Positions 1-55,995 of a stretch of 64,000 nucleotides of DNA are shown here, one piece after another (positions within the stretch are counted from its first letter, which is position 1; each line of letters begins with the position of its first letter). The DNA comes from Eukaryota sp. TZLM1-RC (Eukaryota; Protista; Metamonada: BaSk clade), in contig JAUPSS010000003.1 of NCBI GenBank assembly GCA_040285825.1, positions 2,108,001-2,172,000 of the forward strand, written 5' to 3'. A program made the position numbers and the translations under genes. Below the pieces are notes generated by a model, which was not told the origin of the DNA, did not search any database, and saw only the letters and a program-made list of their open reading frames with translations.

Positions 1-1160
1 AAAATAGAAAACACAATTCTATTTTGCCAAAACAATCTGTTGAAATTTCTCCCAGTTCTTCTCTTTACAATCAACTCAAAATCATCCAAAAAACGTAAAG
101 CAGTTGGTGCAGGTGAACCAAAAAGGGAAAATACAAATGGATACAAATTGTATTTTGCATGTTGTAGACTGGCCAATTTGGACAAAGGTTCATTGTATTT
201 TTTGAATTTAAAATTTTCAGCATTTGAAAGGGGATTATGAATTTCAGAATTAACAAGCCTTTCATTTGAGGCATTACAAGGATCAACAGACATTACATCC
301 AATAAAATGAAGCTTCCATCTAATCCAGGTAATATGACATCACCTCTATTATTCTTATGAAAATCATTTTCAGCATCAAACAGATTTGACAACAGAGGTT
401 CCAAGAAGGATTCAATTCTATGAGATTTACACATACAATATAACTGGTCTCTTACAGCATCATGAACCTTGCTTCTAAAAGTAATAAAATGTTTACAATT
501 TAACAAATGAGTAATTGTAATTTCTCACCTCTATTGATTGAGGAAAACATTTGTATTTTTTGAATTAAAAATTTTCAGCATTTGAAAGGGGATCTTTAGC
601 AATTAATTGTTTTGATGTAGGGGAGGCAGGTTTTGAGGATGTGGAGTTTTAATTGTGTATTTCATATTTGTTGTTGAATAAAAATAAAAAGAAATTTAAA
701 CAAAAAAATCCAGGTAATATAACATCACCTCTATTATTCTTATGAAAATCATCTTCAGCATCAAACAGATTTGACAACAGAGGTTCCAAGAAGGATTCAA
801 TTCTATGAGATTTACACATACAATATAACTGGTCTCTTACAGCATCATGAACCTTGCTTCTAAAAGTAATAAAATGTTTACAATTTAACAAATGAGTAGT
901 TGTAATTTTTCGAGAACATTTACAAATTAAATTATGAGGTAAATTATCAGGCCAGATAAAGGAACGAAATCTCATATTCAGAGTCCAAGCAGAATCGGAT
1001 AAGAGAGTACCATAAACTTGTGGAATTGTTGTTACTAAGGCAGAAGAAGTACTGTCACACATATCTTGTAAAAGATTTGCAAAAGCAGGATTCTTTTTCT
1101 TGGCCAAGCCAAGTCTAACATCAAAATCCAAGCTTTCAAAAATCTTTGACAATTTTTGTT
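1..1160 (-). mobile_element. Family A 3' (RLE) fragments interrupted by a patchwork containing a + strand family B tail (~592-708)
   Basis: ORF 649..1215; B stop and 3' UTR gtggagttttaattgtgtatttcatatttgttgttgaataaaa at ~641-690; same block at ~17724-18885. Confidence 0.85.
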
Positions 1161-3455
1161 GAATCTGCAAATCTTTCGTGAATCTGCAACATCTTTTTTG
1201 CAAAATGGACAACAAAAATTACTGTTTTCAGAAGGGGAAGAAGAGGGAACACTAGAAGCATTTAACTGTTGATCGTCAGAAACATTATTTTCAGCACCTT
1301 TCACAACGGCAACAGCTGGAACAGAACATTTGAGAATTTGTTGAGCAGATTTTAATTCAAATTCACCTCTATTTTTTTTTACAAAATTTTAATTTTATTC
1401 AAAACCTATAAATCAACATCTAAAAAATCCATCTCTCCCAAAACAAAAACACTAGATGCAACTCTCTCATAGTGAGATCCAAGAGAAAGCAAAGCATCAG
1501 AAACCATCTTCAACATCCCCTTAAAAATAGAAAACACAATTCTATTTTGCCAAAACAATCTGTTGAAATTTCTCCCAGTTCTTCTCTTTTAGATCAATTC
1601 AAAATCATCCAAAAAACGTAAAGCAGTTGGTGCAAGTGAACCAAAAAAGGAAAATACAAATGGATACAAATTGTATTTTGCATGTTGTAGACTGGCCAAT
1701 TTGGACAAAGGTTCATTGTATTTTTTGAATTTAAAATTTTCAGCATTTGAAAGGGGATTATGAATTTCAGAATTAACAAGCCTTTCATTTGAGGCATTAC
1801 AAGGATCAACAGACATTACATCCAATAAAATGAAGCTTCCATCTAATCCAGGTAATATGACATCACCTCTATTATTCTTATGAAAATCATTTTCAGCATC
1901 AAACAGATTTGACAACAGAGGTTCCAAGAAGGATTCAATTCTATGAGATTTACACATACAATATAACTGGTCTCTTACAGCATCATGAACCTTGCTTCTA
2001 AAAGTAATAAAATGTTTACAATTTAACAAATGAGTAGTTGTAATTTTTCGAGAACATTTACAAATTAAATTATGAGGTAAATTATTAGGCCAGATAAAGG
2101 AACGAAATCTCATATTCAGAGTCCAAGCAGAATCGGATAAGAGAGTACCATAAACTTGTGGAATTGTTGTTACTAAGGCAGAAGAAGTACTGTCACACAT
2201 ATCTTGTAAAAGATTTGCAAAAGCAGGATTCTTTTTCTTGGCCAAGCCAAGTCTAACATCAAAATCCAAGCTTTCAAAAATCTTTGACAATTTTTGTTGA
2301 ATCTGCAAATCTTTCGTGAATCTGCAACATCTTTTTTGCAAAATGGACAACAAAAATTACTGTTTTCAGAAGGGGAAGAAGAGGGAACACTAGAAGCATT
2401 TAACTGTTGATCGTCAGAAACATTATTTTCAGCACCTTTCACAACGGCAACAGCTGGAACAGAACATTTGAGAATTTGTTGAGCAGATTTTAATTCAAAT
2501 TCACCTCTATTTTTTTTTTACAAAATTTTAATTTTATTCAAAACCTATAAATCAACATCTAAAAAATCCATCTCTCCCAAAACAAAAACACTAGATGCAA
2601 CTCTCTCATAGTGAGATCCAAGAGAAAGCAAAGCATCAGAAACCATCTTCAACATCCCCTTAAAAATAGAAAACACAATTCTATTTTGCCAAAACAATCT
2701 GTTGAAATTTCTCCCAGTTCTTCTCTTTACAATCAATTCAAAATCATCCAAAAAACGTAAAGCAGTTGGTGCAAGTGAACCAAAAAAGGAAAATACAAAT
2801 GGATACAAATTGTATTTTGCATGTTGTAGACTGGCCAATTTGGACAAAGGTTCATTGTATTTTTTGAATTTAAAATTTTCAGCATTTGAAAGGGGATTAT
2901 GAATTTCAGAATTAACAAGCCTTTCATTTGAGGCATTACAAGGATCAACAGACATTACATCCAATAAAATGAAGCTTCCATCTAATCCAGGTAATATGAC
3001 ATCACCTCTATTATTCTTATGAAAATCATTTTCAGCATCAAACAGATTTGACAACAGAGGTTCCAAGAAGGATTCAATTCTATGAGATTTACACATACAA
3101 TATAACTGGTCTCTTACAGCATCATGAACCTTGCTTCTAAAAAGTAATAAAATGTTTACAATTTAACAAATGAGTAGTTGTAATTTTTCGAGAACATTTA
3201 CAAATTAAATTATGAGGTAAATTATTAGGCCAGATAAAGGAACGAAATCTCATATTCAGAGTCCAAGCAGAATCGGATAAGAGAGTACCATAAACTTGTG
3301 GAATTGTTGTTACTAAGGCAGAAGAAGTACTGTCACACATATCTTGTAAAAAGATTTGCAAAAGCGGGATTCTTTTTCTTGGCCAAGCCAAGTCTAACAT
3401 CAAAATCCAAGCTTTCAAAAATCTTTGACAATTTTTGTTGAATCTGCAAATCTTT
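1161..3455 (-). repeat. Tandem repeat of a ~1.14 kb unit (A N-terminal fragment + 5'-truncated A tail)
   Basis: Linker aatctgcaaatcttt recurs at ~1161, 2300 and 3441; ORFs 1035..1304 and 2173..2442 are identical. Confidence 0.9.
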
Positions 3456-5568
3456 TTTTTCTCCCTCCCTTAGTCAACCCTCTCATATTTCACTTTCTGT
3501 CAAGGCGTCAAAGTCTTACTGTTTCTCTGTCAAAACGATGCCATTGGCTGATAGTGACTCTGATACTGATTGGAACTCCCGAGTAAAGATTCTACCAGTC
3601 AGATCAAGCTCATCCTCTTCACTTCCCCACTCTCCCCACAATACAAGCTATGCTCGAAATTCATCTCAAAAAAATTTTCATTCAAAAACTGATCATTGTA
3701 CCAGAAAAACCACACAAAAAACACAATTACGATCCTTACGTTCTGTTGCGCGTTCCATTGACAACTCCTTTTCTCGAAATTTGTTTGCTCCAGCTGAAAT
3801 TGGAAAAAGTCAAAAATCTATTTCTACTTTTAACTCACCAATTGACAAAATAGAAATAACAGAAAAAATAAAACCTTTACCATTAAAAGGTTCTAAAAAA
3901 TGTTCGATTTGTGGTATCAGTGGTCATAATTTGAGAACATGCCCTGAAAAACAAAAAAGAGAAATTGAATTAAAATCTGCTCAACAAATTCTTGAATGTT
4001 CTGTTCCAGCTGATGCCGTTGTGAAAGGTGCTGAAAATAATGTTTCTGACGATCAACATTTAAATGCTTCTAGTGCTCACTCTTCTTCCCCTTCTGAAAA
4101 CAGAAATTTTTGTTGTCCATTTTGCAAAAAGATGTTATAGATTCAAGAAATGGTCGAAAACTTCTGTTTTGTACGAATTGTAAAGCCGTTGATACCGTAA
4201 GACCCCCGATCCGGATCCCAGTAGAAATTAGCCCCGCCAGCACAATCCCCTTCTCAATGGAAATGAGAAATTTTACTTCTGAATTGAAAAATAATAAGTG
4301 GAATATTTCATCCTTCTGGAAATATTTTGCTCGAAAAAACAAAAATTGTTTTAAGAAAAATTTGGAAATAGAAGAATTGTAAAATCAAAAATTTGCCGAA
4401 AATTGTGCTTACGTGGTCGTTATGGTGCCGCAAAGCAGTCCTTGTTTTCCTCTTCTTTGGCTGATGCAAACTCTGATACCCTTGAAAAACTTCAAAAGTT
4501 GCATCCTCAAGAAAATTTCAAGTGCAGCAAGCCTGATGTGTGTCCTTTTTGGATTGAAAATCCTATTACTGCAATTGAAGTTCTTAAAGCTATTCAAAAA
4601 TTACCAAAGGGGAAAGCAGCAGGCCCATCTGGAATTTCTTTTGATCTCTTAAAAATAGCATGTTCCAGTGCTCCTGAAATTGCTGATGATCTAGCCCATT
4701 ATTTTCAACAATTAATTGTTTTGAAAATTAATCCTCCATTTGAATTACTCGCTGCACGTCTGATTGCTTTAGTAAAGCCTGGAAACGGAATCAAACCTGA
4801 TGGAATACGCCCAATTGCTGTTGGTGAATCTCTTTCTCGTTTGCTAGCATCAATTGTCTTCGATCGTGTCAAAGACAAAGCTTCTACATTTTTGAATCCT
4901 CATCAATTTGGAATCAAAACAATTGATGGTGCTTCTGTTGCTGCTATTGCCTCTGATACCTTTTTTAATGCAGAGGAAAATAATTTTATTTTTAATCTCG
5001 ACTTTAAAAATGCCTTTAATTCTGTAAAGCGAGAAGCAATTTTTGAAGTTATTAAATCTGATTTTCCTGAGCTATCGAGTTTTTTTTACCATTTTTATGG
5101 GAAAGAATCGGATTTAATTTTTAATTCATTTGGTCTTAAATCATCTTCTGGTGTGAAGCAAGGTGATCCTTTGGGCCCGTTATTATTTTGTTTAGCTATT
5201 CACAAAACTTTAAATATCATTAAGCACAAATACCCTTCTATAAAAATAGTTGCTTATATGGATGATATATCCTTGATTGGTTCATTTGATTTACTAGAAT
5301 TGGTTGCTCAAGAAATTGCCGATTCATATAAAAATATTGGGCTTCATCTTAATGCCAGCAAATGCCTTCTGATTGGATCTTCTGCTCAAGATCTCGTGAT
5401 AAACGATTCTATTGTCCCTTTTACTAATTATAGTAGTGATGCTTTTAAGTTCCTTGGTTGTTGGTTAGGAAACGTGCCTCAAATTCAGAATGAATTACAA
5501 GTTATTTTGGAAAAAATGAAAATTGAACTTGATTCAATTTCTTCTTTAGATATAGAAAAAAACATATT

Positions 5569-8500
5569 AATTTATATTTATTTCTTCAGAAGATTGCCTT
5601 GGTTTATTGACCAAATTTTTTTCAACCAAATATTATCTGGTCAACGCAAGTACCCAGAAGAATTAAGAAGTTCTCGTTTGACTGCACTTGTCAAAAATTC
5701 AAAAATGGATGTTCGTCCTATTGCAGTCTCTGAGAGCTTACATAATATTTTTTTCTGCGTGTTGCTTAAGCAGGTTCAATGAAAAAAAGCTAAAAAGATT
5801 TTTATTACCCTTTCAATATGGTATAAATACTACAGATGGAGTCTCTTCAGCGATTTTTGCTACTGATGTCTTATTTTCGTCAAAAATGAATCCAATGTTT
5901 GCATGTCATTGGATTTTTAGTAATGCTTTCAATTCGCTAAGTCGTCGCAGTATCCATGGTGCTCTATTGCAATATATGCCAGAATTAATACCATATTTTC
6001 AATCAACATATTGCACATATTCTAATTTACATTTTGGTAACAACATTTTGATTTCATCAAGTGGCGTAAAAGCAAGGAGATCCGTTAGGACCTCTTTTTG
6101 TTTTGTTTGGCCATTCATCCTATTCTACTGCAAATTCAAGAGATGTTTCCTTCACTAAAAAAATGATTGCATATATGGATGATGTTGTGCTTATTGGTGA
6201 ATTAAATATTGTGAAAAAAAGCAACTGTATGTTTTAAAGAATTATTTACCAAAATTGGTCTCCGACTTAATTTTCTTAAATGTGTTTTGTTATCGAATTC
6301 TCCAGTTTCCACAATAATTGATGATATTGAAATTCAAGCCAAATTATATTCAATTGATGCTATTCGTCATTTGGGTTCGTTTTTAGGAAATAATGATGAA
6401 ATTACCAAAAAATTGTTTGAAAAGTTGAACTCAATTTCTGACAAAATTGACCGAATGATGAATTTAGATATAAAAAAACACATCAAATTTACCATTATAA
6501 GACTGTGTTTTAGTTCCAATTTTAATCATATATTTCGATCTACAAATCCTCTCGTCACTAGACCTTTGGCTCAAAAGTTTAATGAGTTACGTGCAAAAGT
6601 TCTGTCTCAATTACTGGGATGTAAAATGTTTCAAATTCCAGATCATGCTTACCTTAGTCCACAATATGGTGGTTTAGGGTGGACGAAGGCTTCTATTCTT
6701 ACCTCGTGTGCTTTTGTTGGTGGATGCAGAAATGCAATCTTTGAAAGAAAAATGTATTTGTTCGAATTTTTTATGCTTAAAATTTGCTACACTGGGAGAA
6801 TAACCCACATTTTGAGATCTTGTGCTCCTTCCATAGCATTAGATTTTTGTCGTTCTTTTAATTCATTGAGAACAGAATTTTTTGCTGATTTATTGGATGT
6901 AGAACCAGGAATGTTGAAAAGCCATTTATTTTCTTCAGCAAATTTGGGGGGTATTGGATTTACTAAATCTTCAATTTTGTGTCAATCAGCATTCTTGGGT
7001 GGTGGCAAAAATTTTATTTATGAATTTTCTCGTAGATTTCCTGATGATTCTCATCTGTTAGTCCCCAATTGTAGTCCCTATTTGTATGAGTTATCTTGTG
7101 AACTTGAAAAATTACCGCCACAAATTTGGACCAAATGTTTTCCTCAATCAATTCAAGAAATTCCAAACCGATCTCTATTTAATTTACAGTTTTGCTGTAA
7201 AAAGCTTCAACAAAAATTGTCAAAGATTTTTGAAAGCTTGGATTTTGATGTTAGACTTGGCTTGGCCAAGAAAAAGAATCCCGCTTTTGCAAATCTTTTT
7301 ACAAGATATGTGTGACAGTACTTCTTCTGCCTTAGTAACAACAATTCCACAAGTTTATGGTACTCTCTTATCCGATTCTGCTTGGACTCTGAATATGAGA
7401 TTTCGTTCCTTTATCTGGCCTGATAATTTACCTCATAATTTAATTTGTAAATGTTCTCGAGAAATTACAACTACTCATTTGTTAAATTGTAAACATTTTA
7501 TTACTTTTAGAAGCAAGGTTCATGATGCTGTAAGAGACCAGTTATATTGTATGTGTAAATCTCATAGAATTGAATCCTTCTTGGAACCTTTGTTGTCAAA
7601 TCTGTTTGATGCTGAAAATGATTTTCATAAGAATAATAGAGGTGATGTCATATTACCTGGATTAGATGGAAGCTTCATTTTATTGGATGTAATGTCTGTT
7701 GATCCTTGTAATGCCTCAAATGAAAGGCTTGTTAATTCTGAAATTCATAATCCCCTTTCAAATGCTGAAAATTTTAAATTCAAAAAATACAATGAACCTT
7801 TGTCCAAATTGGCCAGTCTACAGCATGCAAAATACAATTTGTATCCATTTGTATTTTCCCTTTTGGTTCACTTGCACCAACTGCTTTACGTTTTTTGGAT
7901 GATTTTGAAATGATTGTAAAGAGAAGAACTGGCAGAAATTTCAACAGATTGTTTTGGCAAAATAGAATTGTGTTTTCTATTTTTAAGGGGATGTTGAAGA
8001 TGGTTTCTGATGCTTTGCTTTCTCTTGGATCTCACTATGAGAGAGTTGCATCTAGTGTTTTTGTTTTGGGAGAGATGGATTTTTTAGATGTTGATTTATA
8101 GGTTTAGAATAAAATTAAATTTTAAAAAAAAAAAAAAAAAATTCACCTCAACTCACTTTGCGCCATGCTCTAAATTGCTCTAAATTGATAACTTATCGTT
8201 CTTCATTACATGATGCTGTTAGAGACACTGTTTTCAATATGGCACAAACTGCAAGGATATCGTGTATCAAAGAGCCCCTGCTGAAAGAAACACTTTCTCT
8301 GAATAATTTTGGTTCTGATGATAGAGGTGATGTATACTGTGATTGGATTGATAATTCTGAAGCTATTGTTGACTTTGTCTCATGTAATGTTGCAAACGAT
8401 ACTTTGGTTCACAGAAGAAAACTTAATCCTGTGGCTGCTCTGGATTTTAAAGCAAAAGAAAAACATAGAAAATATGATAAAGAAATTGAAGATGCAAATA

Positions 8501-8829
8501 TCGATAGAAATACACAGCTGGTTTTTATTGCTTTTCCATTTTCGATAAATGGAAGATTATCAGTTGAAGCAGAAACTTTTTTGGATGACTTCCAAAAAAT
8601 GGTGAAAGAAAAAACAATGAAAAGATTTGATATTTTTTTATGGCGTTCACGGATTCAATTTGCCATTATTAATAGATTACCGCGGTTTTTCAATCGAATT
8701 AGAGAAGCTTTAGCTAGACAGCAAGCAAATCAAGATTTTGTAGAGGAAATCTTGGTTTAATGATAGTCGTCCCATTAGTTATGATTTAATTTAATCAAGT
8801 GTGCAAATTCAATAAATTAACTTATATAA
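5569..8829 (+). mobile_element. 5'-truncated, internally deleted family C element inserted in A
   Basis: Distinct RT (MDVRPIAVSESL, YMDDVVLIG) and C-terminus ..DFVEEILV (ORF 8158..8760); aaaaacatatt on both sides. Confidence 0.88.
6769..8139 (+). mobile_element. Young 5'-truncated family A copy nested in C
   Basis: Begins FFMLKICY, ends in an 18-nt poly(A) at 8124-8141; C is uninterrupted (gttcgaattcacctc) in the duplicate at ~23331-23345. Confidence 0.9.
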
Positions 8830-9564
8830 AAAAACATATTAAATTTTTCATGCTTAAAATTTGCTACACTGGGAGAATGACCCACATTTTGAGATCTTGT
8901 GCTCCTTCCATAGCATTAGATTTTTGTCGTTCTTTTAATTCATTGAGAACAGAATTTTTTGCTGATTTATTGGATGTAGAACCAGGGATGTTGAAAAGCC
9001 ATTTATTTTCTTCAGCAAATTTGGGTGGTATTGGATTTACTAAGTCTTCAATTTTGTGTCAATCAGCATTCTTGGGTGGTGGCAAAAATTTTATTTATGA
9101 ATTTTCTCGTAGATTTCCTGATGATTCTCATCTGTTAGTTCCCAATTGCAGTTCTTATTTGTATGAGTTATCTTGTGAACTTGAAAAATTGCCGCCACAA
9201 ATTTGGACCAAATGTTTTCCTCAATCAATTCAAGAAATTCCAAACCGATCTCTTTTTAATTTACAGTTTTGCTGTAAAAAGCTTCAACAAAAATTGTCAA
9301 AGATTTTTGAAAGCTTGGATTTTGATGTTAGACTTGGCTTGGCCAAGAAAAAGAATCCCGCTTTTGCAAATCTTTTACAAGATATGCGTGACAGTACTTC
9401 TTCTGCCTTAGTAACAACAATTCCACAAGTTTATGGTACTCTCTTATCCGATTCTGCTTGGACTCTGAATATGAGATTTCGTTCCTTTATCTGGCCTGAT
9501 AATTTACCTCATAATTTAATTTGTAAATGTTCTCGAGAAATTACAACTACTGATTTGTTAAATT

Positions 9565-9633
9565 AATTTATTGAATTTGCACACTTGATTAAATTAAATC
9601 ATAACTAATGGGACGACTATCATTAAACCAAGG
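9565..9633 (-). mobile_element. 69-bp family C 3' tail insertion
   Basis: Reverse complement of the C 3' UTR; TSD tttgttaaatt at 9554-9564 and 9634-9644. Confidence 0.85.
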
Positions 9634-10306: not shown

Positions 10307-11323
10307 TAATTCCCACTCGATCACTTCCAAATTTACGTTTTTGCTTGAAAAAGCTTCAGCACCATCTGGTTAAATTATATGAAGGCTTGGATTATGAAGT
10401 AAGACTTGGCTTGGCCAAAACTAAAAATCCCGCTTTCGGTAATTTTTTAAAGGATATTCGTCATAGTTCAGCTGCTGCTTTAGTAACTCAAGTTCCCTCT
10501 GTTTATGGACTTTTGTTAAAAGACAATGAATGGCTTCTAAACATGCGTTTTCGTTGTTTTCTGTGGCCAAACAATTTGCCCAATCATTTAACTTGTAAAT
10601 GTGGTAAACCTCTTTTGTTTACTCATCTTTTGAACTGTAAACATTTCATTACGTTTAGAAGCAAAGTGCATAATAACGTCAGGGACCAAATTTATGTAAT
10701 GTGCAAATCATATCGTGTAGATTCCTTTTTAGAACCGCTGTTATCAAAATTAATTCTTGATGATCCCAATATTGATAGTACGCGTTACAACAGAGCTTCT
10801 ATGGGTCTGACTAGAGGTGATCTAGTTGTTCCTGGTTTAAATGGTAGTTTTACTATTTTGGACGCCATGTCTATTGACCCTTGTAATTCCTCTAACGAAC
10901 ATTTCATTAACTCGGATGTAAATAATCCTCTTCTTGCAGGCGAAAAATATAAAATTGCTAAATATGCGAAACCCATTTCCTCGGTTAATGAAAATTCTCA
11001 TGCCCAATATAATTTATGTCCATTTGTTTTTTTCTTTGCTTGGATCTCTAGGTAAGGCTGCTATGGCTTTCCTTGAGGATTTTGTTGTAGTTGTAAAGGA
11101 AAGAACTGGAAGAATTTTCAATCGTGTTTACTGGCAAAACAGGATTGTATTTTCTATTTTTAAGGGAATGGTAACACTAATTTCTGATTTACTATCTTCT
11201 TTTTGGGAAATTTTCTGAATCTTTAGCGATTAATTGTTTTGATGTAGGGGAGGCAGGTTTTGAGGATGTGGAGTTTTAATTGTGTATTTCATATTTGTTG
11301 TTGAATAAAAAGTTTTAGAAAAA
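10307..11323 (+). mobile_element. 5'-truncated family B element (zinc finger + RLE)
   Basis: ORFs 10345..11055 and 10934..11218; ends ..GFEDVEF; TSD aaatctttcgt at 10296-10306 and 11324-11334. Confidence 0.88.
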
Positions 11324-11340
11324 AAATCTTTCGTGAATCT

Positions 11341-12258
11341 TTTTTTTTTAATTTATTTTTATTCAACAACAAATATGAAATACAATTAATTTATTGAATT
11401 TGCACACTTGATTAAATTAAATCATAACTAATGGGACGACTATCATTAAACCAAGATTTCCTCTACAAAATCTTGATTTGCTTGCTGTCTAGCTAAAGCT
11501 TCTCTAATTCGATTGAAAAACCGCGGTAATCTATTAATAATGGCAAATTGAATCCGTGAACGCCATAAAAAAAATATCAAATCTTTTTCATTGATTTTTC
11601 TTTCACCATTTTTTGGAAGTCATCCAAAAAAGTTTCTGCTTCAACTGATAATCTTCCATTTATCGAAAATGGAAAAGCAATAAAAACCAGCTGTGTATTT
11701 CTATCGATATTTGCATCTTCAATTTCTTTATCATATTTTCTATGTTTTTCTTTTGCTTTAAAATCCAGAGCAGCCACAGGATTAAGTTTTCTTCTGTGAA
11801 CCAAAGTATTGTTTGCAACATTACATGAGACAAAGTCAACAATAGCTTCAGAATTATCAATCCAATCACAGTATACATCACCTCTATCATCAGAATCAAA
11901 AATTATTCAGAGAAAGTGTTTCTTTCAGCAGGGGCTCTTTGATACACGATATCCTTGCAGTTTGTGCCATATTGAAAACAGTGTCTCTAACAGCATCATG
12001 TAATGAAGAACGATAAGTTATCAATTTAGAGCAATTTAGAGCATGGCGCAAAGTGAGTTGAGGTGAATTCGAACAAATACATTTTTCTTTTGATAATAAT
12101 TGGTTAATGGGGATGTTCAAATATAATCTCATTTTTGTTACAAATGCTTCATTAGTAGCACACAATCCAAATCTTCGTGGTACAATGGTTACAAAAAGTG
12201 AAGAATCTGACACCTTGTTTTCACAAACACCCTTTTCCAATAACAATGAGTGAAGATC
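11341..12258 (-). mobile_element. Short B tail (~11341-11384) followed by family C 3' portion
   Basis: ORFs 11896..12246 and 11577..11804 match the C C-terminus; C 3' UTR reverse complement at ~11385-11450. Confidence 0.85.
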
Positions 12259-13465: not shown

Positions 13466-13496
<31 letters not shown>

Positions 13497-23379: not shown

Positions 23380-23997
23380 ATTGATAACTTATCGTTCTTC
23401 ATTACATGATGCTGTTAGAGACACTGTTTTCAATATGGCACAAACTGCAAGGATATCGTGTATCAAAGAGCCCCTGCTGAAAGAAACACTTTCTCTGAAT
23501 AATTTTGGTTCTGATGATAGAGGTGATGTATACTGTGATTGGATTGATAATTCTGAAGCTATTGTTGACTTTGTCTCATGTAATGTTGCAAACGATACTT
23601 TGGTTCACAGAAGAAAACTTAATCCTGTGGCTGCTCTGGATTTTTAAAGCAAAAGAAAAACATAGAAAATATGATAAAGAAATTGAAGATGCAAATATCG
23701 ATAGAAATACACAGCTGGTTTTTATTGCTTTTCCATTTTCGATAAATGGAAGATTATCAGTTGAAGCAGAAACTTTTTTTGGATGACTTCCAAAAAAATG
23801 GTGAAAGAAAAAACAATGAAAAGATTTGATATTTTTTTATGGCGTTCACGGATTCAATTTGCCATTATTAATAGATTACCGCGGTTTTTCAATCGAATTA
23901 GAGAAGCTTTAGCTAGACAGCAAGCAAATCAAGATTTTGTAGAGGAAATCTTGGTTTAATGATAGTCGTCCCATTAGTTATGATTTAATTTAATCAA

Positions 23998-37410: not shown

Positions 37411-37569
37411 TTTTGGCAAAATAGAATTGTGTTTTCTATTTTTAAGGGGATATTGAAGATGGTTTCTGATGCTTTGCTTTCTCTTGGATCTCACTATGAG
37501 AGAGTTGCATCTAGTGTTTTTGTTCTGGGAGAGATGGATTTTTTAGATGTTGATTTATAGGTTTTGAAT

Positions 37570-38912: not shown

Positions 38913-38914
38913 TT

Positions 38915-41900: not shown

Positions 41901-42644
41901 TATCAACGGCTTTACAATTCGTACAAAACAGAAGTTTTCGACCATTTCTTGAATCTGTAACATCTTTTTTGCAAAATGGACAACAAAAATTACTGTTTTC
42001 AGAAGGGGAAGAAGAGTGAGCACTAGAAGCATTTAAATGTTGATCGTCAGAAACATTATTTTCAGCACCTTTCACAACGGCATCAGCTGGAACAGAACAT
42101 TCGAGAATTTGTTGAGCAGATTTTAATTCAATTTCTCTTTTTTGTTTTTCAGGGCACGTTCTCGAATTATGACCACTGATACCACAAATCGAACATTTTT
42201 TAGAACTTTTTAATGGCAGTGGTTTCATTTTTTCAGTTCTTTCTATTTTGTCAATTTGTGAGTTAAAAGTAGAAATAGACTTTTGACTTTTTCCAGTTTC
42301 AGCTGGAGAAAACAAATTTCGAGAAACGGAGTTGTTAATGGAACGCGCAACAGAAGGTAAGGAACGTAATGGTGGTTTTTGTGTGTTTTTTCTGGTACAA
42401 TGATCAGTTTTTGAATGAAAATTTTTTTGAGATGAATTTCGAGCATAGCTTGCATTGTGGGGAGAGTGGTTGAGTGAAGGAGATGAGCTTGTTCTGACTG
42501 GTAGAATCTTTGCTTGGGCGTTCCAATCAGTATCAGAGTCACTATCAGCCAAAGGCATCGTTTTGACAGAGAAACAGTACGACTTTGACGCCTTGACAGA
42601 AAGTGAAATATGAAAGGGTTGACTAAGGGAGGGAGAAAAAAAAA
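38915..42644 (-). mobile_element. Full-length family A element with C-tail insertions at ~38950-39008 and 41370-41523
   Basis: ORFs 39211..41205 and 41506..42729; TSD agtaataggatttt at 41356-41369 and 41524-41537. Confidence 0.9.
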
Positions 42645-42904
42645 CTTCGCACAAGTGGTTCAACAAAAGCTTCAATGTGATGACTTTTGCACATAGCGTA
42701 TAGTTGGTCTCTAACAGCATCGTGAACAACTGAACGATATGTAATATTAAATTTGGAATTAAATAAATGATTCAGATTGATGAGCTGACCACAACGACAA
42801 ATCAAATCATTTGGCACACTACATGGCCACAGAAAACACCTCATCCTGAAGGCAGTTGTCCATTGATAGACCATTTACATTTGGAATCTAGGAAATAAGA
42901 CAAC
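42645..42904 (-). mobile_element. Family D zinc-finger fragment (repeated at ~46391-46651)
   Basis: RCFLWPCSVPNDLICRCGQ..HDAVRDQLYAMCK; matches the longer D piece at 54886-55585. Confidence 0.8.
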
Positions 42905-45900
42905 TTTTTTTTGACCAAAATTTTAATTTTATTCAAAACCTATAAATCAACATCTACAAAATCCATCTCTCCCAGAACGAAAACACTGGATGCAACTTTC
43001 TTATAGTGAGATCCAAGAGAAAGCAAAGCATCAGAAACCATCTTCGACATCCCCTTAAAAATAGAAAACACAATTCTATTTAGCCAAAACAATCTGTTGA
43101 AATTTTTGCCAGTTCTTCTCTTTACAATCATTTCAAAATCATCCAAAATACGTAGAGCAGTTGGTGAAAGTGAACCAAAAAGGGAAAATACAAATGGATA
43201 CAAATTGTATTTTGCATGCTGTAGACTGGCCAATTTGGACAAAGGTTCATTGTATTTTTTGAGTTTGAAATTTTCAGCATTTGAAAGAGGATTATGAATT
43301 TCAGAATTAACAAGCCTTTCATTTGAGGCATTACAAGGATCAACAGACATTACATCCAATAAAATGAAACTTCCATCTAATCCAGGTAATATAACATCAC
43401 CTCTATTATTCTTATGAAAATCATCTTCAGCATCAAACAGATTTGACAACAGAGGTTCCAAGAAGGATTCAATTCTATGAGATTTACACATACAATATAA
43501 CTGGTCTCTTACAGCATCATGAACCTTGCTTCTAAAAGTAATAAAATGTTTACAATTTAACAAATGAGTAGTTGTAATTTCTCGAGAACATTTACAAATT
43601 AAATTATGAGGTAAATTATCAGGCCAGATAAAGGAACGAAATCTCATATTCAGAGTCCAAGCAGAATCGGATAAGAGAGTACCATAAACTTGTGGAATTG
43701 TTGTTACTAAGGCAGAAGAAGTACAGTCACACATATATTGTAAAAGATTTGCAAAAGCGGGATTCTTTTTCTTGGCCAAGCCAAGTCTAACATCAAAATC
43801 CAAGCTTTCAAAAATCTTTGACAATTTTTGTTGAAGCTTTTTACAGCAAAACTGTAAATTAAAAAGAGATCGGTTTGGAATTTCTTGAATTGATTGAGGA
43901 AAACATTTGGTCCAAATTTGTGGCGGCAATTCTTCAAGTTCACAAGATAACTCATACAAATGAGGACTGCAATTGGGAACTAACAGATGAGAATCATCAG
44001 GAAATCTACGAGAAAATTCAAAAATAAAATTTTTGCCACCACCCAAGAATGCTGATTGACACAAAATTGAGGATTTAGTAAATCATATACCACCCAAATT
44101 TGCTGAAGAAAATAAATGGCTTTTCAACATTCCTGGTTCTACATCCAATAAATCGGCAAAAAATTCTGTTCTCAATGAATTAAAAGAACGACAAAAATCT
44201 AATGCTATGGAAGGAGCACAAGATCTCAAAATGTGGATTATTCTCCCAGTGTAGCAAATTTTAAGCATGAAAAATTTAATACGTTTTTCTATATCTAAAG
44301 AAGAAATTGAATCAAGTTCAATTTTCATTTTTTCCAAAATAACTTGTAATTCATTCTGAATTCGAGGCACGTTTCCTAACCAACAACCAATTAACTTAAA
44401 AGCATCACTACTATAATTAGTAAAAAGGACAATAGAATCATTTATCACGAGATCTTGAGCAGAAGAGCCAATGAGAAGGCATTTGCTCGCATTAAGATGA
44501 AGCCCAATATTTTCATATGAATCGGCAATTTCTTGAGCAACCAATTCTAGTAAATCAAATGAACCAATCAAGGATATATCATCCATATAAGCAACTATTT
44601 TTATAGAAGGGTATTTTTGCTTAATGATATTTAAAGTTTTGTGAATAGCTAAACAAAACAATAACGGGCCTAAAGGATCACCTTGCTTCACACCAGAAAA
44701 TGATTTAAGACCAAATGAATTAAAAATTAAATCTGATTCTTTCCCATAAAAATGGAAGAAAAAACTCGATAGCTCAGGAAAATCAGACTTAATAACTTCA
44801 AAAATTGCTTCTCGCTTTACAGAATTAAAAGCATTTTTAAAGTCGAGATTAAAAATAAAATTATTTCCCTCTGCATTAAAAAAGGTATCAGAGGCAATAG
44901 CAGCAACAGAAGCACCATCAATTGTTTTAATTCCAAATTGATGAGGATTCAAAAATGTAGAAGCTTTGTCTTTGACACGATCGAAAACAATTGATGCCAG
45001 CAAACGAGAAAGAGATTCACCAACAGCAATTGGGCGTATTCCATCAGGTGTGATTCCGTTTCCAGGCTTTACTAAAGCAATCAGACGTGCAGCGAGTAAT
45101 TCAAATGGAGGATTAATTTTCAAAACAATTAATTGTTGAAAATAATGGGCTAGATCATCAGGAATTTCGGGAGCACTGGAACACGCTATTTTTAAGAGAT
45201 CAAAAGAAATTCCAGATGGGCCTGCTGCTTTCCCCTTTGGTAATTTTTGAATAGCTTTAAGAACTTCAATTGCAGTAATAGGATTTTCAATCCAAAAAGG
45301 ACACACATCAGGCTTGCTGCACTTGAAATTTTTTGAGGATGCAACTTTTGAAGTTTTTCAAGGGTATCAGAGTTTGCATCAGCCAAAGAAGAGAAAAACA
45401 AGGACTGCTTTGCGGCACCATAACGACCACGTAAGCACAATTTTCGGCAAATTTTTGATTTTACAATTTTTCTATTTCCAAATTTTTTCTTAAAACAATT
45501 TTTGTTTTTTCGAGCAAAATATTTCCAGAAGGATGAAATATTCCACTTATTATTTTTCGATTCAGAAGTAAAATTTCTCATTTCCATTGAGAAGGGGATT
45601 GTGCTGGCGGGACTAATTTCTACTGGGATCCGGATCAGGGGTCTTACGGTATCAACGGCTTTACAATTCGTACAAAACAGAAGTTTTCGACCATTTCTTG
45701 AATCTGTAACATCTTTTTTGCAAAATGGACAACAAAAATTACTGTTTTCAGAAGGGGAAGAAGAGTGAGCACTAGAAGCATTTAAATGTTGATAGTCAGA
45801 AACATTATTTTCAGCACCTTTCACAACGGCATCAGCTGGAACAGTACATTCGAGAATTTGTTGAGCAGATTTTAATTCAATTTCTCTTTTTTGTTTTTCA

Positions 45901-46390
45901 GGGCACGTTCTCGAATTATGACCACTGATACCACAAATCGAACATTTTTTAGAACCTTTTAATGGTAAAGGTTTTATTTTTTCTGTTATTTCTATTTTGT
46001 CAATTGGTGAGTTAAAAGTAGAAATAGATTTTTGACTTTTTCCAATTTCAGCTTCAGCAAACAAATTTCGAGAAAAGGAGTTGTCAATGGAACGCGCAAC
46101 AGAACGTAAGGAACGTAATGGTGGTTTTTGTGTGTTTTTTCTGGTACAATGATCAGTTTTTGAATGAAAATTTTTTTGAGATGAATTTCGAGCATAGCTT
46201 GCATCGTGGGGAGAGTGGTTGAGTGAAGGAGATGAGCTTGTTCTGACTGGTAGAATCTTTGCTTGGGCGTTCCAATCAGTATCAGAGTCACTATCAGCCA
46301 AAGGCATCGTTTTGACAGAGAAACAGTACGACTTTGACGCCTTGACAGAAAGTGAAATATGAAAGGGTTGACTAAGGGAGGGAGAAAAAA
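42905..46390 (-). mobile_element. Full-length family A element (two frame breaks)
   Basis: ORFs 45192..46307, 44083..45306 and 42940..44064 are colinear; 5' T-run and 3' A-tail. Confidence 0.92.
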
Positions 46391-48105
46391 ATTTCGCACA
46401 AGTGGTTCAACAAAAGCTTCAATGTGATGACTTTTGCACATAGCGTATAGTTGGTCTCTAACAGCATCGTGAACAACTGAACGATATGTAATATTAAATT
46501 TGGAATTAAATAAATGATTCAGATTGATGAGCTGACCACAACGACAAATCAAATCATTTGGCACACTACATGGCCACAGAAAACACCTCATCCTGAAGGC
46601 AGTTGTCCATTAATAGACCATTTACATTTGGAATCTGGGAAATAAGACAACTTTTTTTTGACCAAAATTTTAATTTTATTCAAAACCTATAAATCAACAT
46701 CTACAAAATCCATCTCTCCCAGAACAAAAACACTAGATGCAACTTTCTCATAGTGAGATCCAAGAGAAAGCAAAGCATCAGAAACCATCTTCGACATCCC
46801 CTTAAAAATAGAAAACACAATTCTATTTTGCCAAAACAATCTGTTGAAATTTTTGCCAGTTCTTCTCTTTACAATCATTTCAAAATCATCCAAAATACGT
46901 AGAGCAGTTGGTGCAAGTGAACCAAAAAGGGAAAATACAAATGGATACAAATTCTATTTTGCATGCTGTAGACTGGCCAATTTGGACAAAGGTTCATTGT
47001 ATTTTTTGAATTTAAAGTTTTCAGCATTTAAAAGAGGATTATGAATTTCAGAATTAACAAGCCTTTCATTTGAGGCATTACAAGGATCAACAGACATTAC
47101 ATCCAATAAAATGAAGCTTCCATCTAATCCAGGTAATATAACATCACCTCTATTATTCTTATAAAAATCATCTTCAGCATCAAACAGATTTGACAACAGA
47201 GGTTCCAAGAAGGATTCAATTCTATGAGATTTACACATACAATATAACTGGTCTCTTACAGCATCATGTACCTTACTTCTAAAAGTAATAAAATGTTTAC
47301 AATTTAACAAATGAGTAGTTGTAATTTCTCGAGAACATTTACAAATTAAATTATGAGGTAAATTATCAGGCCAGATAAAGGAACGAAATCTCATATTCAG
47401 AGTCCAAGCAGAATCGGATAAGAGAGTACCATAAACTTGTGGAATTGTTGTTACTAAGGCAGAAGAAGTACAGTCACACATATCTTGTAAAAGATTTGTA
47501 AAAGCGGGATTCTTTTTCTTGGCCAAGCCAAGTCTAACATCAAAATCCAAGCTTTCAAAAATCTTTGACAATTTTTGTTGAAGCTTTTTACAGCAAAACT
47601 GTAAATTAAAAAGAGATCGGTTTGGAATTTCTTGAATTGATTGAGGAAAACATTTGGTCCAAATTTGTGGCGGCAATTTTTCAAGTTCACAAGATAACTC
47701 ATACAAATAAGGACTGCAATTGGGAACTAACAGATGAGAATCATCAGGAAATCTACGAGAAAATTCATAAATAAAATTTTTGCCACCACCCAAGAATGCT
47801 GATTGACACAAAATTAAAGATTTAGTAAATCCAATACCACCCAAATTTGCTGAAGAAAATAAGTGACTTTTCAACATTCCTGGTTCTACATCCAATAAAT
47901 CAGCAAAAAATTCTGTTCTCAATGAATTAAAAGAACGACAAAAATCTAATGCTATGGAAGGAGCACAAGATCTCAAAATGTGGGTTATTCTCCCATTGTA
48001 GCAAATTTTAAGCATGAAAAATTTAATATGTTTTTTTGAGGTTTACAATTTTCAGGAATATCGGTTGAATCCAATTCTAGACCTCTACAATTCTAGACCT
48101 TTCTT

Positions 48106-48906
48106 ATGGGGCTATCTTTTGACCTTCTTTTGACATCTCCTGACCTTAAGTCACTGTCTGTACGCCCCACAGAAGACACCAAAGTAAGAGTTGTGTACAC
48201 CTATCTTTATCTTGGTTGTACACAAAGACAAACAGCTGAACTATTTTCAGTTTCACAATCATCCATCAGTAAATGGGTGAGCTACTATCTAACCCTCAAA
48301 ACACGGCAGGAGAAGATACTTGCCGATCTTTATGTTAGTGAGGAGGAATCTGCTGATGAAGACTGCCTATCACATGATTCTCGGTGTATCTTGACATCTG
48401 AAGAAGAAGAGGAACTACTAGCTTTCGTTGAAAAGGATCCGCTTTCTTTCTTACGAGAAATCCGTTCTTTCGTCCGCTCTAAGTTTAATAAAACCATTTC
48501 CATAACAACTGTTCACAGAATACTTGTTAGACATGGGTACTCATACAAAAAGTGCCAAAATCTTGTCCGAAGGGCGAAGTTGTTGCTTATAACAAAGTTT
48601 GAGACTAATTATATGCTTGACATTGGACTTGTACTACATCATCAACTGGTTTTTATTGATGAACTTTCGTTTAAAACACAAGTCAATGCTCGTTCCTATG
48701 GTCGTTCTCCCAAAGGACAATCCATATACACTGTACAACCTGAGATGCTACAGGTCCAAGTAAGTGCTTTACACTGTGCTTTGAAAGGTTTGGTTGACTT
48801 TGACTGTCGAGGATTTTTTAATCACTGTGGATGGATAGATCTACGAAATGTCGATTCTCCTTATTCAAGGCCTGGTTCCAAGTTGTTAGATGCATTAACT
48901 GACTAG
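48106..48906 (+). pseudogene. Truncated Tc1/IS630-like transposase (copy inside the retroelement array)
   Basis: Two HTH-like segments (QRQTAELFSVSQSSISKWV; LREIR..ISITTVHRIL..GYSYKK) and LVFIDE..YGRSPKG; no later DDE residues seen. Confidence 0.85.
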
Positions 48907-49307
48907 ACAATATGTTGTTTTATATAAAGTTTTTCGCAAATGTTGATCTTTGAAACGGTTATTGATTACTGGTGAGAGTCTTGGACATTCGAAATAGAAG
49001 CAAAAAGCAACGTCAACAGGCCGAGGAACATAAGAAGACAAGGGGAAAAGCGAAATAACGGCAGAAGGGGCTTCATTAACTATGTCAGATGCCAGTTTTT
49101 CTGGACTTGATGTATTAACTGTTGATGGAGAAGTTTGCCGAGCATTCGAAAAGTTGAATGAATCATCAAAAGTGAGAGGAAAAGGTGGTAATGAAGAAGG
49201 ACCAAACATAGATAAGGAGGTCGAAAATTTCTGATTATTCTTTAGAAGTGAAAATCACAATTCTATATCTAAAGAAAAAATTGAATCAAGTTCAATTTTC
49301 ATTTTTT

Positions 49308-52300
49308 TTTCTCCCTCCCTCAGTCAACCCTCTCATATTTCACTTTCTGTCACGGCGTCAAAGTCGTACTGTGTCTTTGCCAAAACGATGCCAGTGACTG
49401 ACAGTGACTCTGATACTGATTGGAACGCCCAAGCAAAGATTCTACCCATCAGATCAAGCTCATCCCCTTCACTTCTCCACTCTCACCACCCTTCAAGCTA
49501 TGCTCGAAATTCTTCTCAAAAAAATTTGAAAATTTTTAAAAAAGATTTTTTGCCTTTGTGTGATGCCCCTGATATTATGTCTGAAAAAGTGCAAAAAAGA
49601 AGACAAACCTGTTCCAAATGTGGCAAGGTTGGTCATAACATTAGAAAATGTCCTGATATTATTACCGAAAAAATGAGACTGAAAACCAATATTTCTATTG
49701 TTAAAGTTTGCAAACGCCATCCGAACTGAATCTTCCTCCTGTTCCCAATGTTTCTGCTGATGATGTTAATTATGATTTAAATATTGATCAAACTCATTTA
49801 CCAAAAACTGTTGCTCCTGATCCTATGGATAATGTCTTGAAACATAATTGTCCTTTTTGCAAAAAGTTCCTCTCTAATTCTTCTAATAATAGCCCTCTCT
49901 TGTTTTATTTTGACTGTCAAACAAGTGATTCTCTTCGTGCACCTGTTAAAATTCCTGTAGAGGTGAGTCCTGCCAGTTCTGTTCCTATGTCAATGGAAAT
50001 GCGTTCTTTTTCTTCGCAATTGAAATTGAACAAATGTAACATAACAAGATTTTGGAAATTCTTTGCCAAAAAGAATAAGAAGAAAATTAATTACAAACCA
50101 AAACAGAGAAAAGCTAATTCATCTTTTCAAGCAAGAAAATTGTTTTTGAGAGGTAGATATGGAAGCGGATTAAAAAATATTTTTTCGGGAAAACTGGCTG
50201 ATACCAATCTCGAAACTGTTGAAAAATTGAAATCCCTCCATCCAACTGAACATTTTTGCCCCAGTAAGCCTTCTATTTGTCAATATTGGCTCGAAAATCC
50301 ATTTCAGGCTCAAGAAGTATTGTATGCCGTTGCTAAATTACCAAAAGGAAAAGCTGCTGGTCCTTCAGGCATTTCCTTTGATTTGTTAAAAACTGCCTGT
50401 AAAAATGCTCCTGAAATTGTTGAGGATCTTGCTTCCTATTTTCAAAATTTAATGTGTTTAAATTATGTTCCTCCGCCTGAATTGACTGCTGCCTGTTTAG
50501 TTGCTTTAGTTAAACCTGGTAAAGGTGACAAACCTGATGGAGTTAGACCAATTGCTATTGGAGAGTCATTAACCAGATTGCTTTCTTCGCTTATTTTTAA
50601 CAGAATTTCTACTAAAGCAAGGGACTATTTGAAGCCTTTCCAATTTGGTATAAAAACTGGTGAAGGTGCTTCTGTTGCTTCAATGACTTCAGATGTTTTT
50701 TTCAATAGTCAACAACATCAATATATTTTCAATTTGGATTTCAAAAATGCTTTCAATTCTGTGAAAGGTAATTGTATTTTTGATGTGCTTCTTCATGATT
50801 TTCCTGAAATTTCTGCATATTTTTATTTATTTTATGGAAAAAAATCAGACTTAATTTTTGACTCCTTTACCCTTGAATCTTCTTCTGGTGTGAAACAAGG
50901 TGATCCTCTTGGCCCTTTGCTGATTTGTTTGGCTATTCATAATATTATTAAAATGACACAACAAGATTTCTTTGATCTGCGTATTGTTGCCTATATGGAT
51001 GACATTTCTATTATTGGTTCTTTTTTTTACAATATTGGTTCTTTTGAAAGCATTTCTAGGGTCTCTGAAAACATTGCGGCGAAATACAAAGAAATTGGAT
51101 TAGCTTTGAACCCATCTAAATGTCTCTTGATTGGTAGAGAAAAACAATCTTTGATGATTGGTGGAGCTCAGATTCCTTTTATCAATTATGACCAACAAGC
51201 TTTTAAGTTTCTTGGATGTTGGCTTGGCAATTTGGATGAAATTTATTCCCAGTTAAACAATTTATTGGAGAAGTTTGACAAGGATCTTAGTTTTATTGCT
51301 GAATGTGACATTGAGAAACACATCAAATTTTTTTATTTTAAAAATTTGTTATTCTGGAAAATTCACTCATATTTTAAGGTCAACTCCCCTTCGGTATCTC
51401 TCAATTTTTGCAGATCTTTTAACAAACTTCGAGTCAAATTTTTTTCTTTTTTTATTAGAAGTAAATGAATCTTTAATTCGAAGTCATGTATTTTGTTCAG
51501 CAGATTTGGGTGGCATTGGATTCACCAAATCTTCGATTCTGTGTAAAGCAGCATTTTTGGGAGGTGGTAAAAATTTTGTTTTTGAATTTTTCCAAAGGTT
51601 CCCTTTTGATGTTCATCTGATCAATGGTGAATCAAATTTTTATTTGAATCAACTTCAAATCGAATTAGATAATTTGCCTAGTGATATCTGGATTCAGTGT
51701 TTTCCTCAAAATGTTCAAGAAATTCCCACCCGATCACTTCCAAATTTACGTTTTTGCTTGAAAAAGCTTCAGCACCATCTGGTTAAATTATATGAAGGCT
51801 TGGATTATGAAGTAAGACTTGGCTTGGCCAAAACTAAAAATCCCGCTTTCGGTAATTTTTTAAAGGATATTCGTGATAGTTCAGCTGCTGCTTTAGTAAC
51901 TCAAGTTCCCTCTGTTTATGGACTTTTGTTAAAAGACAATGAATGGCTTCTAAACATGCGTTTTCGTTGTTTTCTGTGGCCAAACAATTTGCCCAATCAT
52001 TTAACTTGTAAATGTGGTAAACCTCTTTTGTTTACTCATCTTTTGAACTGTAAACATTTCATTATGTTTAGAAGCAAAGTGCATAATAACGTCAGGGACC
52101 AAATTTATGTAATGTGCAAATCATATCGAGTAGATTTTTTTAGAACCGCTGTTATCAAAATTAATTCTTGATGATCCCAATATTGATAGTACACGTTACA
52201 ACAGAGCTTCTATGGGTCTGACTAGAGGTGATCTAGTTGTTCCTGGTTTAAATGGTAGTTTTACTATTTTGGACGCCATGTCTATTGACCCTTGTAATTC

Positions 52301-52729
52301 CTCTAACGAACATTTCATTAACTCGGATGTAAATAATCCTCTTCTTGCAGGCGAAAAATATAAAATTGCTAAATATGCGAAACCCATTTCCTCGGTTAAT
52401 GAAAATTCTCATGCCCAATATAATTTATGTCCATTTGTTTTTTCTTTGCTTGGATCTCTAGGTAAGGCTGCTATGGCTTTCCTTGAGGATTTTGTTGTAG
52501 TAGTAAAGGAAAGAACTGGAAGAATTTTCAATCGTGTTTACTGGCAAAACAGGATTGTATTTTCTATTTTTAAGGGATTGGTAACACTAATTTCTGATTC
52601 ACTATCTTCTTTTGGGAAATTTTCTGAATCTTTAGCGATTAATTGTTTTGATGTAGGGGAGGCAGGTTTTGAGGATGTGGAGTTTTAATTGTGTATTTCA
52701 TATTTGTTGTTGAATAAAAATAAATAATT
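49308..52729 (+). mobile_element. Full-length family B element with TSD aattttcatttttt
   Basis: ATG 49388, knuckle CSKCGKVGHNIRKC, RT 49708..51468, stop 52688; TSD 49294-49307 and 52730-52743. Confidence 0.92.
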
Positions 52730-54885: not shown

Positions 54886-55585
54886 ACAGTGCTTTGGTCA
54901 ACATTTCTGGAATTGCTTTAAGAATACTACAAACAATTCTATTGTGCCAGAAATTGAAGTTCAATTCTTTTCCTGCTCTTTCTCTTATTAAACTTCTGAA
55001 ACCTTCAAGAAATTTAATGCCAGATATTCCAATGTTACCAAAAAGAGAAACAGCAAATGGAACCAACTGATACTTGACATGCTCAACACGTCCTAGCTGA
55101 GATAAGGGTTCATTGTACTTTTTGATTTTGCTCTTTTCAGCAAAGCAAAGTGGAGTTTCATCTCTTTTAGCAAAATCAATTGCTGAGTCTTTACAAACAT
55201 CAACAGTGACAACATCAACAACTTTAATAACACCATCAGACGCAGGGGTAATTAAATCAGCACGGCGTTTCCCAAAAGTATTTTCATCTTCATTTTCCGA
55301 TGACAACCTTCGCACAAGTGGTTCAACAAAAGCTTCAATGTGATGACTTTTGCACATAGCGTATAGTTGGTCTCTAACAGCATCGTGAACAACTGAACGA
55401 TATGTAATATTAAATTTGGAATTAAATGATTCAGATTGATGAGCTGACCACAACGACAAATCAAATCATTTGGCACACTACATGGCCACAGAAAACACCT
55501 CATCCTGAAGGCAGTTGTAAATTGATGATCATTTAATAATAGACCATTTACATTTGGAATCTGGGAAATAAGACAACTTGAGCTA
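54886..55585 (-). mobile_element. Family D C-terminal (finger + RLE) fragment
   Basis: RRADLITP..VVDVVTVD..AEKSKIKKY in ORF 54281..55459. Confidence 0.82.
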
Positions 55586-55594
55586 ATTTGGTCG

Positions 55595-55995
55595 TAATAG
55601 AGGTGATTTAATGCTCAGAGGTCTTGAAGGAACGACCATCATTACTGATGTAAGATACATTGAGGTGTATTAATTCTGTTATATCGTTAGCTCAGTCAAA
55701 ACACAATACTCCACTGTCTGTTGCCGAAAATTTTAAAAATGATAAATATAGTGCAAGGTTGCTGACCTTGAATATTGAATCACATACTGATTATGTCCTT
55801 TGTCCATTCGGATTCTCCATACATGGCTCGATTGGACCACTTACTTTGTCTTTCTTGGATGATTTCATTGAAATTGTGAAGCAGCGTACAGGAAGAGGTT
55901 GTGACCAGACGTTTTGGCAAAATAGAGCTAAATATTCAATTTGTCAAGGTGTTGTTCCCTTGGTATCTTATGCTTAGTTATTTCTTATTCGGTTT
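55595..55995 (+). pseudogene. Decayed family E RLE fragment
   Basis: RGDLMLRG upstream; PLSVAENFKNDKY..PFGFSIHGSIG..KQRTGR..FWQNR in ORF 55660..55977. Confidence 0.7.

Follow-up and report, generated by a model that had tools for sequence, protein, structure and literature searches.

The window analysed here is a stretch of 64,000 nucleotides from Skoliomonas litria TZLM1-RC (assembly GCA_040285825.1, JAUPSS010000003.1:2,108,001-2,172,000), of which positions 1-55,600 consist of retrotransposons nested in one another. These are long interspersed nuclear elements (LINEs) that encode a restriction-like endonuclease (RLE). In our view the stretch is probably a nest of the ordinary sort, formed by weakly specific RLE LINEs that were active recently, and enlarged by recombination. 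In such a nest, a few closely related, R2-like LINE families would insert by target-primed reverse transcription, and their C-terminal restriction-like endonuclease would cut DNA with little sequence preference. Insertions would persist where they are harmless, i.e. inside older copies, and unequal recombination among the many near-identical copies would then duplicate blocks, both in tandem and segmentally. What is seen in the assembly is the composition of the stretch, the hallmarks of insertion, the duplicated junctions, the genomic position and the dispersed copies.

As it stands, the nest is a routine feature of a repeat-rich protist genome, and non-specific RLE LINEs and transposon nests are both already known kinds. 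The region, we infer, lacks a chromosomal function of its own. The nest does document that RLE LINEs are abundant in a free-living metamonad, have been active recently and are largely non-site-specific, and it illustrates how insertion and unequal recombination together give rise to gene-free stretches. Its importance would grow if each chromosome had one such block as its centromere, or if the elements really preferred to land in other elements.

Composition of the nest and type of its elements

Annotation was performed by self-BLAST and with a library of four sequences: a 3,495-bp copy of family A (29060-32554, minus strand), a copy of family B (49303-52728, plus strand), a 1.9-kb 5′-truncated copy of family C and a piece of a DNA transposon. 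A 260-bp piece of an older family, E, was added to these. LINE families and the DNA-transposon piece account for 54,759 of the 55,600 bases (98.5%), with A making up 67.9% (37.7 kb), B 15.7% (8.7 kb) and C 10.5% (5.8 kb), and with minor shares for E and the DNA transposon (2.2%, or 1.2 kb, each). The strands are nearly balanced, with 25.9 kb on the plus strand vs 27.7 kb on the minus strand. The initial annotation, made from the letters of the window, had described the stretch as almost solely nested RLE-type families in both orientations, which is borne out; its count of 4-5 families comes close, as there are three main, young families (A, B and C) and one or two old ones. Element copies are 93-100% identical to their references; in an older A-like lineage, at 52.7-54.9 kb, identity is 90-93%. 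Compared with itself, the AT-rich window (32-37% G+C) is repeated up to 23-fold from position 1 to ~55,000 and mostly unique from 55 to 64 kb. No ribosomal RNA gene, spliced-leader RNA (SL-RNA), telomeric repeat or microsatellite was found within 1-55,600 by Rfam, ARAGORN or Tandem Repeats Finder, just as the initial annotation had stated; the only matches in the whole window are a tRNA-Leu (56920-57003) and one 38-bp repeat at 62.2 kb. The pieces to which we refer most often are listed here, with the evidence for each.

1-55600, unstranded: right-hand part of a gene-free nest of RLE-type LINEs (families A, B, C and E); 98.5% annotated, no RNA genes or simple repeats inside.
29060-32554, minus strand: full-length A (3,495 bp) inside another A copy, with a 15-bp target-site duplication (TSD); TSD pair at 29045 and 32555, host A overlap 1444-1458.
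42905-46391, minus strand: near full-length A in a head-to-tail array, neighbours separated by 260-bp E spacers; library map.
42644-42904, minus strand: 260-bp fragment of the older RLE family E, present as a spacer; three-way alignment.
49303-52728, plus strand: full-length B inside an older (~91%) A-like copy, with a 14-bp TSD at A 2060-2073; RLE motifs in the 3′ part.
22154-24022, plus strand: 5′-truncated C inside A, with an 11-13-bp TSD; library map and junctions.
13468-15728, minus strand: 5′-truncated A (A 1237-3495) inside B, with a 12-bp TSD; host-coordinate overlap.
48036-49260, minus strand: 1.2-kb DNA-transposon piece inside an A copy at A 2105/2106; helix-turn-helix (HTH) and DDE matches.

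Further E copies comprise a second spacer at 46392-46651, 99% alike to the first, and an uninterrupted copy at ~55308-55577.

The elements are RLE-type LINEs. A LINE-type reverse transcriptase (RT) is followed, on its C-terminal side, by a CCHC motif and a PD-(D/E)XK endonuclease, and the insertions bear the hallmarks of target-primed reverse transcription. RVT_1 is found in the open reading frames (ORFs) of A, B and C at E-values of 1e-24 to 1e-10, and domain scans of the ORFs gave no match to an AP endonuclease (Exo_endo_phos). The full domain order is displayed by P0008 (P9112_005057), a 1,099-aa protein encoded on the same contig and 94% identical to the query of the protein search described below; judging from tag order, it would be the gene model of the copy at 42905-46391. 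A profile of 11 Skoliomonas relatives has the R2 proteins of PDB as its best match (E-value 1e-22), and its C-terminal part aligns with the R2 endonuclease at CCHC, R..H, E, PD, D and K..KY. The CCHC and endonuclease residues (C884, H892, C896, H907, E928 and D962 of P0008) are nearly invariant in 21 sequences, including metagenomic ones at 20-26% identity, and the same motifs are legible in A, B (with one frameshift), C and E. The AlphaFold model of P0008 has a pLDDT of 71, reaching ~85-95 through most of the RT core. When this model is used in Foldseek, the seven best matches are all R2 structures (E-values 1e-22 to 2e-16), and residues 276-1077 of the model align to residues 305-1107 of the R2Bm chain (Z 19). 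The N-terminal part carries a CX2CX4HX4C knuckle, for which the zf-CCHC match is weak and sub-threshold. An exhaustive search with the profile gave 37,444 matches. Ten full-length relatives among them were looked up and are unnamed metagenome or Logan proteins, as are the nearest relatives outside Skoliomonas, which are unnamed metagenome proteins; an ESM Atlas search returned only unnamed RVT_1 clusters.

R2 elements (R2Bm, R2Tg and R2Pm; 8gh6, 9dou, 9nl2 and 9nl3), the best matches by both profile and fold, resemble the Skoliomonas families in having a single ORF with RT, linker, CCHC and PD-(D/E)XK endonuclease, and in their hallmarks of target-primed reverse transcription. They differ in inserting at one site in the 28S rRNA gene and in carrying N-terminal C2H2 and Myb domains, whereas the families described here have the CX2CX4HX4C knuckle and use many unrelated sites. 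Likewise RLE-type LINEs of protists and fungi are the elements of the CRE clade (CRE1/2, SLACS and CZAR), of which Cnl1 and MoTeR are also members; it is to this clade that the initial annotation had likened the families. GilM and GilT of Giardia, a related metamonad lineage, are telomere-associated RLE LINEs that form polarised head-to-tail arrays at chromosome ends. By description only, they are alike as metamonad RLE LINEs in head-to-tail arrays, whereas the nest studied here is interior and of mixed orientation. The CRE clade is mostly target-specific, inserting into spliced-leader genes or telomeric repeats (PMC4640811). Such a specific repeat is not what hosts the Skoliomonas families, which sit in other transposon copies at many positions, without SL-RNA, ribosomal DNA or telomeric repeat. 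The non-specific insertion seen here is shared with the HERO clade, in which many families of RLE LINEs lack target specificity (Kojima and Jurka 2015, PMC4640811), a likeness of behaviour alone.

Two further features of families A and B concern their 5′ ends. A and B are 90% alike over their first 226 bases, covering the 5′ untranslated region and the first codons (49303-49527 vs 32329-32554), and ~71% alike in the body, which suggests, at the level of sequence, that the families exchanged 5′ modules. Full-length A and B copies open with a T run of ~7-10 bases, followed by the invariant CTCCCTCC (32545-32554, 42635-42643, 46383-46391 and 49303-49311). The T run is absent from the host where an uninterrupted host can be compared, namely the E copy at the nest edge.

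Insertion and duplication

Insertions in the nest have A-rich tails, TSDs of 10-15 bp and 5′ truncations that leave as little as 58-127 bp of the 3′ end. Events were curated from overlaps in host coordinates; an automatic TSD finder was swamped by the long repeats and returned few true events. The six TSDs quoted in the initial annotation, which calls them unrelated in sequence, proved to be real: each is an exact pair flanking an insert (29045/32555, 13457/15728, 41356/41524, 9554/9634, 27010/27136 and 22143/24029), and in all six the interrupted host element's two halves share an overlap as long as the TSD. The C-into-A insertion at 22154-24022 recurs at 5582-8823, where a further A insertion (6765-8141) splits it.

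Very short 3′-end inserts of B or C (58-127 bp) with clean 10-14-bp TSDs occur at 9565-9633, 27024-27135, 38949-39012 and 41370-41523, and at 6437-6540 of L002, a locus to the left of the window that is described below. Together, their shortness and clean TSDs point to frequent early abortion of reverse transcription. Template-switch chimeras were considered for the joins of C to A and C to B 3′ ends (38912-39012 and 11351-11393) and rejected, as 12-bp host overlaps identify these joins as nested, very short C insertions. In the full-length A copy at 29060-32554, most places where the frame breaks are only tens of bases away from a 1-bp indel that distinguishes the copy from Illumina contigs of high depth (e.g. 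29905, 30253/30320, 31614 and 31876). Its frameshifts may partly be uncorrected long-read or polishing errors, and family A may encode an intact protein of ~1,100 aa, more intact than is apparent.

Insertion accounts for only part of the array. The annotated pieces meet at 58 junctions; 24 of these are present in the window two or three times over and reduce to 11 junction types, a recurrence that had gone unremarked in the initial annotation. Because these junctions are repeated, part of the array must have been copied after insertion, rather than built by separate insertions. The copied blocks are the following.

1-9564, unstranded: segmental duplicate of 17573 to ~24760; same piece order and junctions, 96.5-100% identity.
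707-3442, minus strand: tandem array with a period of 1,139 bp, the unit being A 2556-3487 + tail + A 508-699; repeat spacings, map and junctions.
32555-37569, plus strand: tandem duplication (period ~1.5 kb) of a composite A/B unit; junction A3314|B1442 present twice.

One tandem unit and one later insertion set the two segmental copies apart. The 1,139-bp array is also present in a shorter version at 18431-20027, and at 41.5-48 kb full-length A alternates with the 260-bp E spacer. As judged from sequence comparison, the duplicated blocks show the pattern that unequal recombination between near-identical copies produces.

The long-range order of the pieces rests on the published Nanopore assembly, and part of the array could in principle be an artefact of that assembly, generated by repeat collapse or false duplication. 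The near-identity of the duplicated blocks (96.5-100%) would fit such an origin, as would the behaviour of short-read contigs from public runs, which end at every repeat border, with none bridging a nested junction. The 1-bp differences from Illumina contigs near most frame breaks of 29060-32554 additionally suggest imperfect polishing. However, the duplicated blocks differ by whole insertions and in tandem copy number, as real paralogs would; TSDs and empty-site paralogs are coherent; and the contig runs into unique genes on both sides. We therefore regard an artefact as highly improbable.

One duplication links the nest to the DNA to its right. The segments at 47305-49267 and 59400-61362 form an inverted duplicate of 1,963 bp (98% alike), in which both arms carry the junction between the DNA transposon, with its HTH/DDE ORF, and A 2105 (at 60631/60632 in the second copy). 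As it is present in both arms, the transposon-A junction was copied as a unit, into or out of the retroelement.

Genomic position, dispersed copies and choice of target

The window lies ~57% along a chromosome-sized contig of 3,724,615 bp, i.e. in its interior; protein look-ups put ORF 20123-22195 at 2,128,123-2,130,195 and ORF 59761-60561 at 2,167,761-2,168,561. The nest continues leftwards beyond the window, which the initial annotation had likewise missed: at locus L002 (2,035,482-2,057,825; 50-72 kb left of the window), 79% of the sequence consists of the same repeats. The sampled ends are 128 kb apart and the upper bound on nest size is ~162 kb. Further left, at 1.98-2.00 Mb, are the host genes PAP2, PIP5K and RCC1. 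A subtelomere, one of the two roles proposed in the initial annotation, is contradicted by this position (2.11-2.17 Mb of a 3.72-Mb contig), by the host genes on both sides, by the lack of a TTAGGG-type repeat and by the balanced strands.

Relatives of the elements elsewhere in the genome were mapped in part, by a protein search of which the 120 best of 461 matches were examined. A-like proteins that are 87-98% identical occur at ~0.09, 2.40 and 2.77 Mb of JAUPSS010000003.1, in small islands that adjoin host genes (RRM/Dymeclin, BTB/LRR and DNA polymerase epsilon), and a 62%-identical relative is found at 1.99 Mb of the same contig, beside PAP2/PIP5K. Among these 120 matches, relatives are present on at least 12 of the 16 contigs. 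On contig 1 the elements occupy no fewer than two distinct zones. The first, of 305 kb, has host genes at the left end as sampled, and on the right it ends in 22 kb that consist of transposons only. A grouping by locus tags had given one cluster per contig; we discarded it, as physical look-ups show that the contig 1 ‘cluster’ spans these 305 kb, host genes included. The S. litria genome comprises 31.9 Mb in 16 contigs (N50 3,724,615) and is 55.4% repetitive (PMC11316075). The repeats thus amount to 17.7 Mb over 16 contigs, and there must be many blocks made of transposons alone. The initial annotation had proposed that the families target one region or chromatin state, and had named dispersed copies beforehand as the finding that would speak against this. 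Dispersal is seen in part: the copies beside genes at 0.09, 2.40 and 2.77 Mb and the relatives on at least 12 contigs, among the best 120 of 461 matches, do not support the proposal.

The other proposed role was that of a centromere. In its present form, this reading takes the 128-162-kb nest as the regional centromere of its chromosome, built from LINEs like the ZeppL clusters of Chlamydomonas, and we hold it to be improbable. ZeppL clusters at putative Chlamydomonas centromeres are gene-poor, 51-320 kb in size, nested, ~60% one LINE family and contain little satellite DNA (PMC9940879). The nest resembles them in size and make-up, being a gene-free block within 50-320 kb in which one family dominates (A, at 68% of the window part), so that one family makes up ~60-70% in both (PMC9940879). 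It also has mixed orientation and lies in the contig interior, and the best 120 of 461 matches form no other dense cluster on contig 3. ZeppL is, however, defined by its near-absence elsewhere, with almost all copies in one cluster per chromosome (PMC9940879), and is L1-type, whereas the Skoliomonas families are RLE-type and, among the same 120 matches, are also dispersed beside genes. Contig 1 has two zones or more, one of them interspersed with genes, and in a genome of which 55% is repeats nothing singles the nest out. In Skoliomonas sp. GEM-RC1, a sister strain with six telomere-to-telomere chromosomes (PMC11316075), the neighbours differ around the ortholog of the GCN5-type gene that flanks the nest on the right, and no nest is seen within 10 kb of it; this is weak evidence, as synteny is not kept there. 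In the genome paper, telomeric repeats are reported for two other assemblies alone, and centromeres go unmentioned (PMC11316075). By analogy with ZeppL, the nest at 2.04-2.16 Mb could be a centromere, with skoliomonad centromeres built from RLE LINEs that land preferentially in one another. This is doubtful to the same marked degree; if true, no RLE-LINE centromere, and no centromere from this branch of Metamonada, would have been described before it.

If the nest is an ordinary one, its growth would reflect passive accumulation, in which selection acts against insertions in genes of a compact, repeat-rich genome. No evident common motif is seen across ~30 independent 3′-junction flanks, and the earlier claim that there is no shared target sequence is broadly right, subject to a lead at the nick and two candidate hotspots. 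Read in the orientation of the element, A is the first base of the TSD in 11 of 12 curated events, which is partly forced by the poly(A) tail. The base preceding the TSD is C in 16 of 24 events, vs 36% expected from local dinucleotide content (P = 0.002); the hypothesis was formed after the first 12 events, and the second 12 alone give 7/12 (P = 0.09). We treat a C|A preference at the nick as a tentative lead. A GATTCA-like motif near insertion sites was dropped: it was not visible at a fixed offset, and no statistical test was applied.

The two hotspots lie within A, rest on ~25 events and were delimited after the fact. The first, A 688-699, has received three insertions and one tandem-unit border, apparently independently. 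In the window (17573 and 10308-11393), these are one A insertion, two opposed B insertions whose tails face each other across 13 bp, and the border of the 1,139-bp unit. The second, A 2060-2117, contains one insertion each of B and C, as well as the DNA-transposon piece, an A|B junction and two points of 5′ truncation (window 5558-5581, 16115, 22143-22153, 48035/48036, 49261-49302 and 6765). This 58-bp stretch contains a palindrome with a 7-bp stem, and the clustering could be due to an RT pause site, a landing preference or chance.

These observations bear on a further alternative, in which other RLE copies or repeat chromatin are actively favoured as landing sites, whether by short sequence or structural cues within the elements or by heterochromatin tethering. 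Nests would then grow by integration bias together with selection, and no role as a centromere is implied. The repeated use of A 688-699 and A 2060-2117 and the weak C|A preference speak for it, as does the 2.40-Mb island, where two young A copies have an older RLE copy as their host or immediate neighbour and the unique DNA around has received neither. On the other hand, the hotspot and C|A statistics are post hoc and come from ~25 events, with the replication half falling to P = 0.09, the flanks share no longer motif, and in a compact genome selection would remove insertions outside repeats, leaving the same picture. We consider active preference unlikely, though less so than a centromere.

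Several points nevertheless weigh against an ordinary nest that grew passively. The two reused stretches of A hint at some site choice, and C is in excess before the TSD. Being the only dense cluster on contig 3 among the best 120 matches, the nest could have a special status on its chromosome. Its extent, furthermore, is taken from the window and L002; a locus-tag density of ~1 per kb over the 50 kb in between (2,057,825 to the window) fits a nest that continues there.

The edge of the nest and its neighbours

At its right-hand end, the nest gives way to decayed older elements and a tRNA-Leu.

54886-59333, unstranded: nest edge, made of decayed RLE families of greater age (E among others; 80-87% alike to pieces of B or A); sequence comparison.
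56920-57003, minus strand: tRNA-Leu, the first non-transposon feature right of the nest, at the decayed edge; Rfam (63 bits) and ARAGORN.

These are followed by the gene for a GCN5-type histone acetyltransferase, P9112_005068 (2,172,409-2,174,718), which lies just outside the window. Beyond this gene is a long terminal repeat (LTR) retrotransposon with RT, RNase H and integrase (L009 1-3128, i.e. record 2,175,434-2,178,561).

For genome annotation, the nests imply that the ‘hypothetical proteins’ deposited in them at ~1 per kb (tags about P9112_004968 to 005067) are fragments of transposon ORFs and not host genes. Models of this kind also occur elsewhere: P0001 (P9112_014461, contig JAUPSS010000001.1), deposited as a protein of 1,097 aa, consists of scrambled A pieces, with the C-terminal half of the RT, the endonuclease twice, and the RT again.

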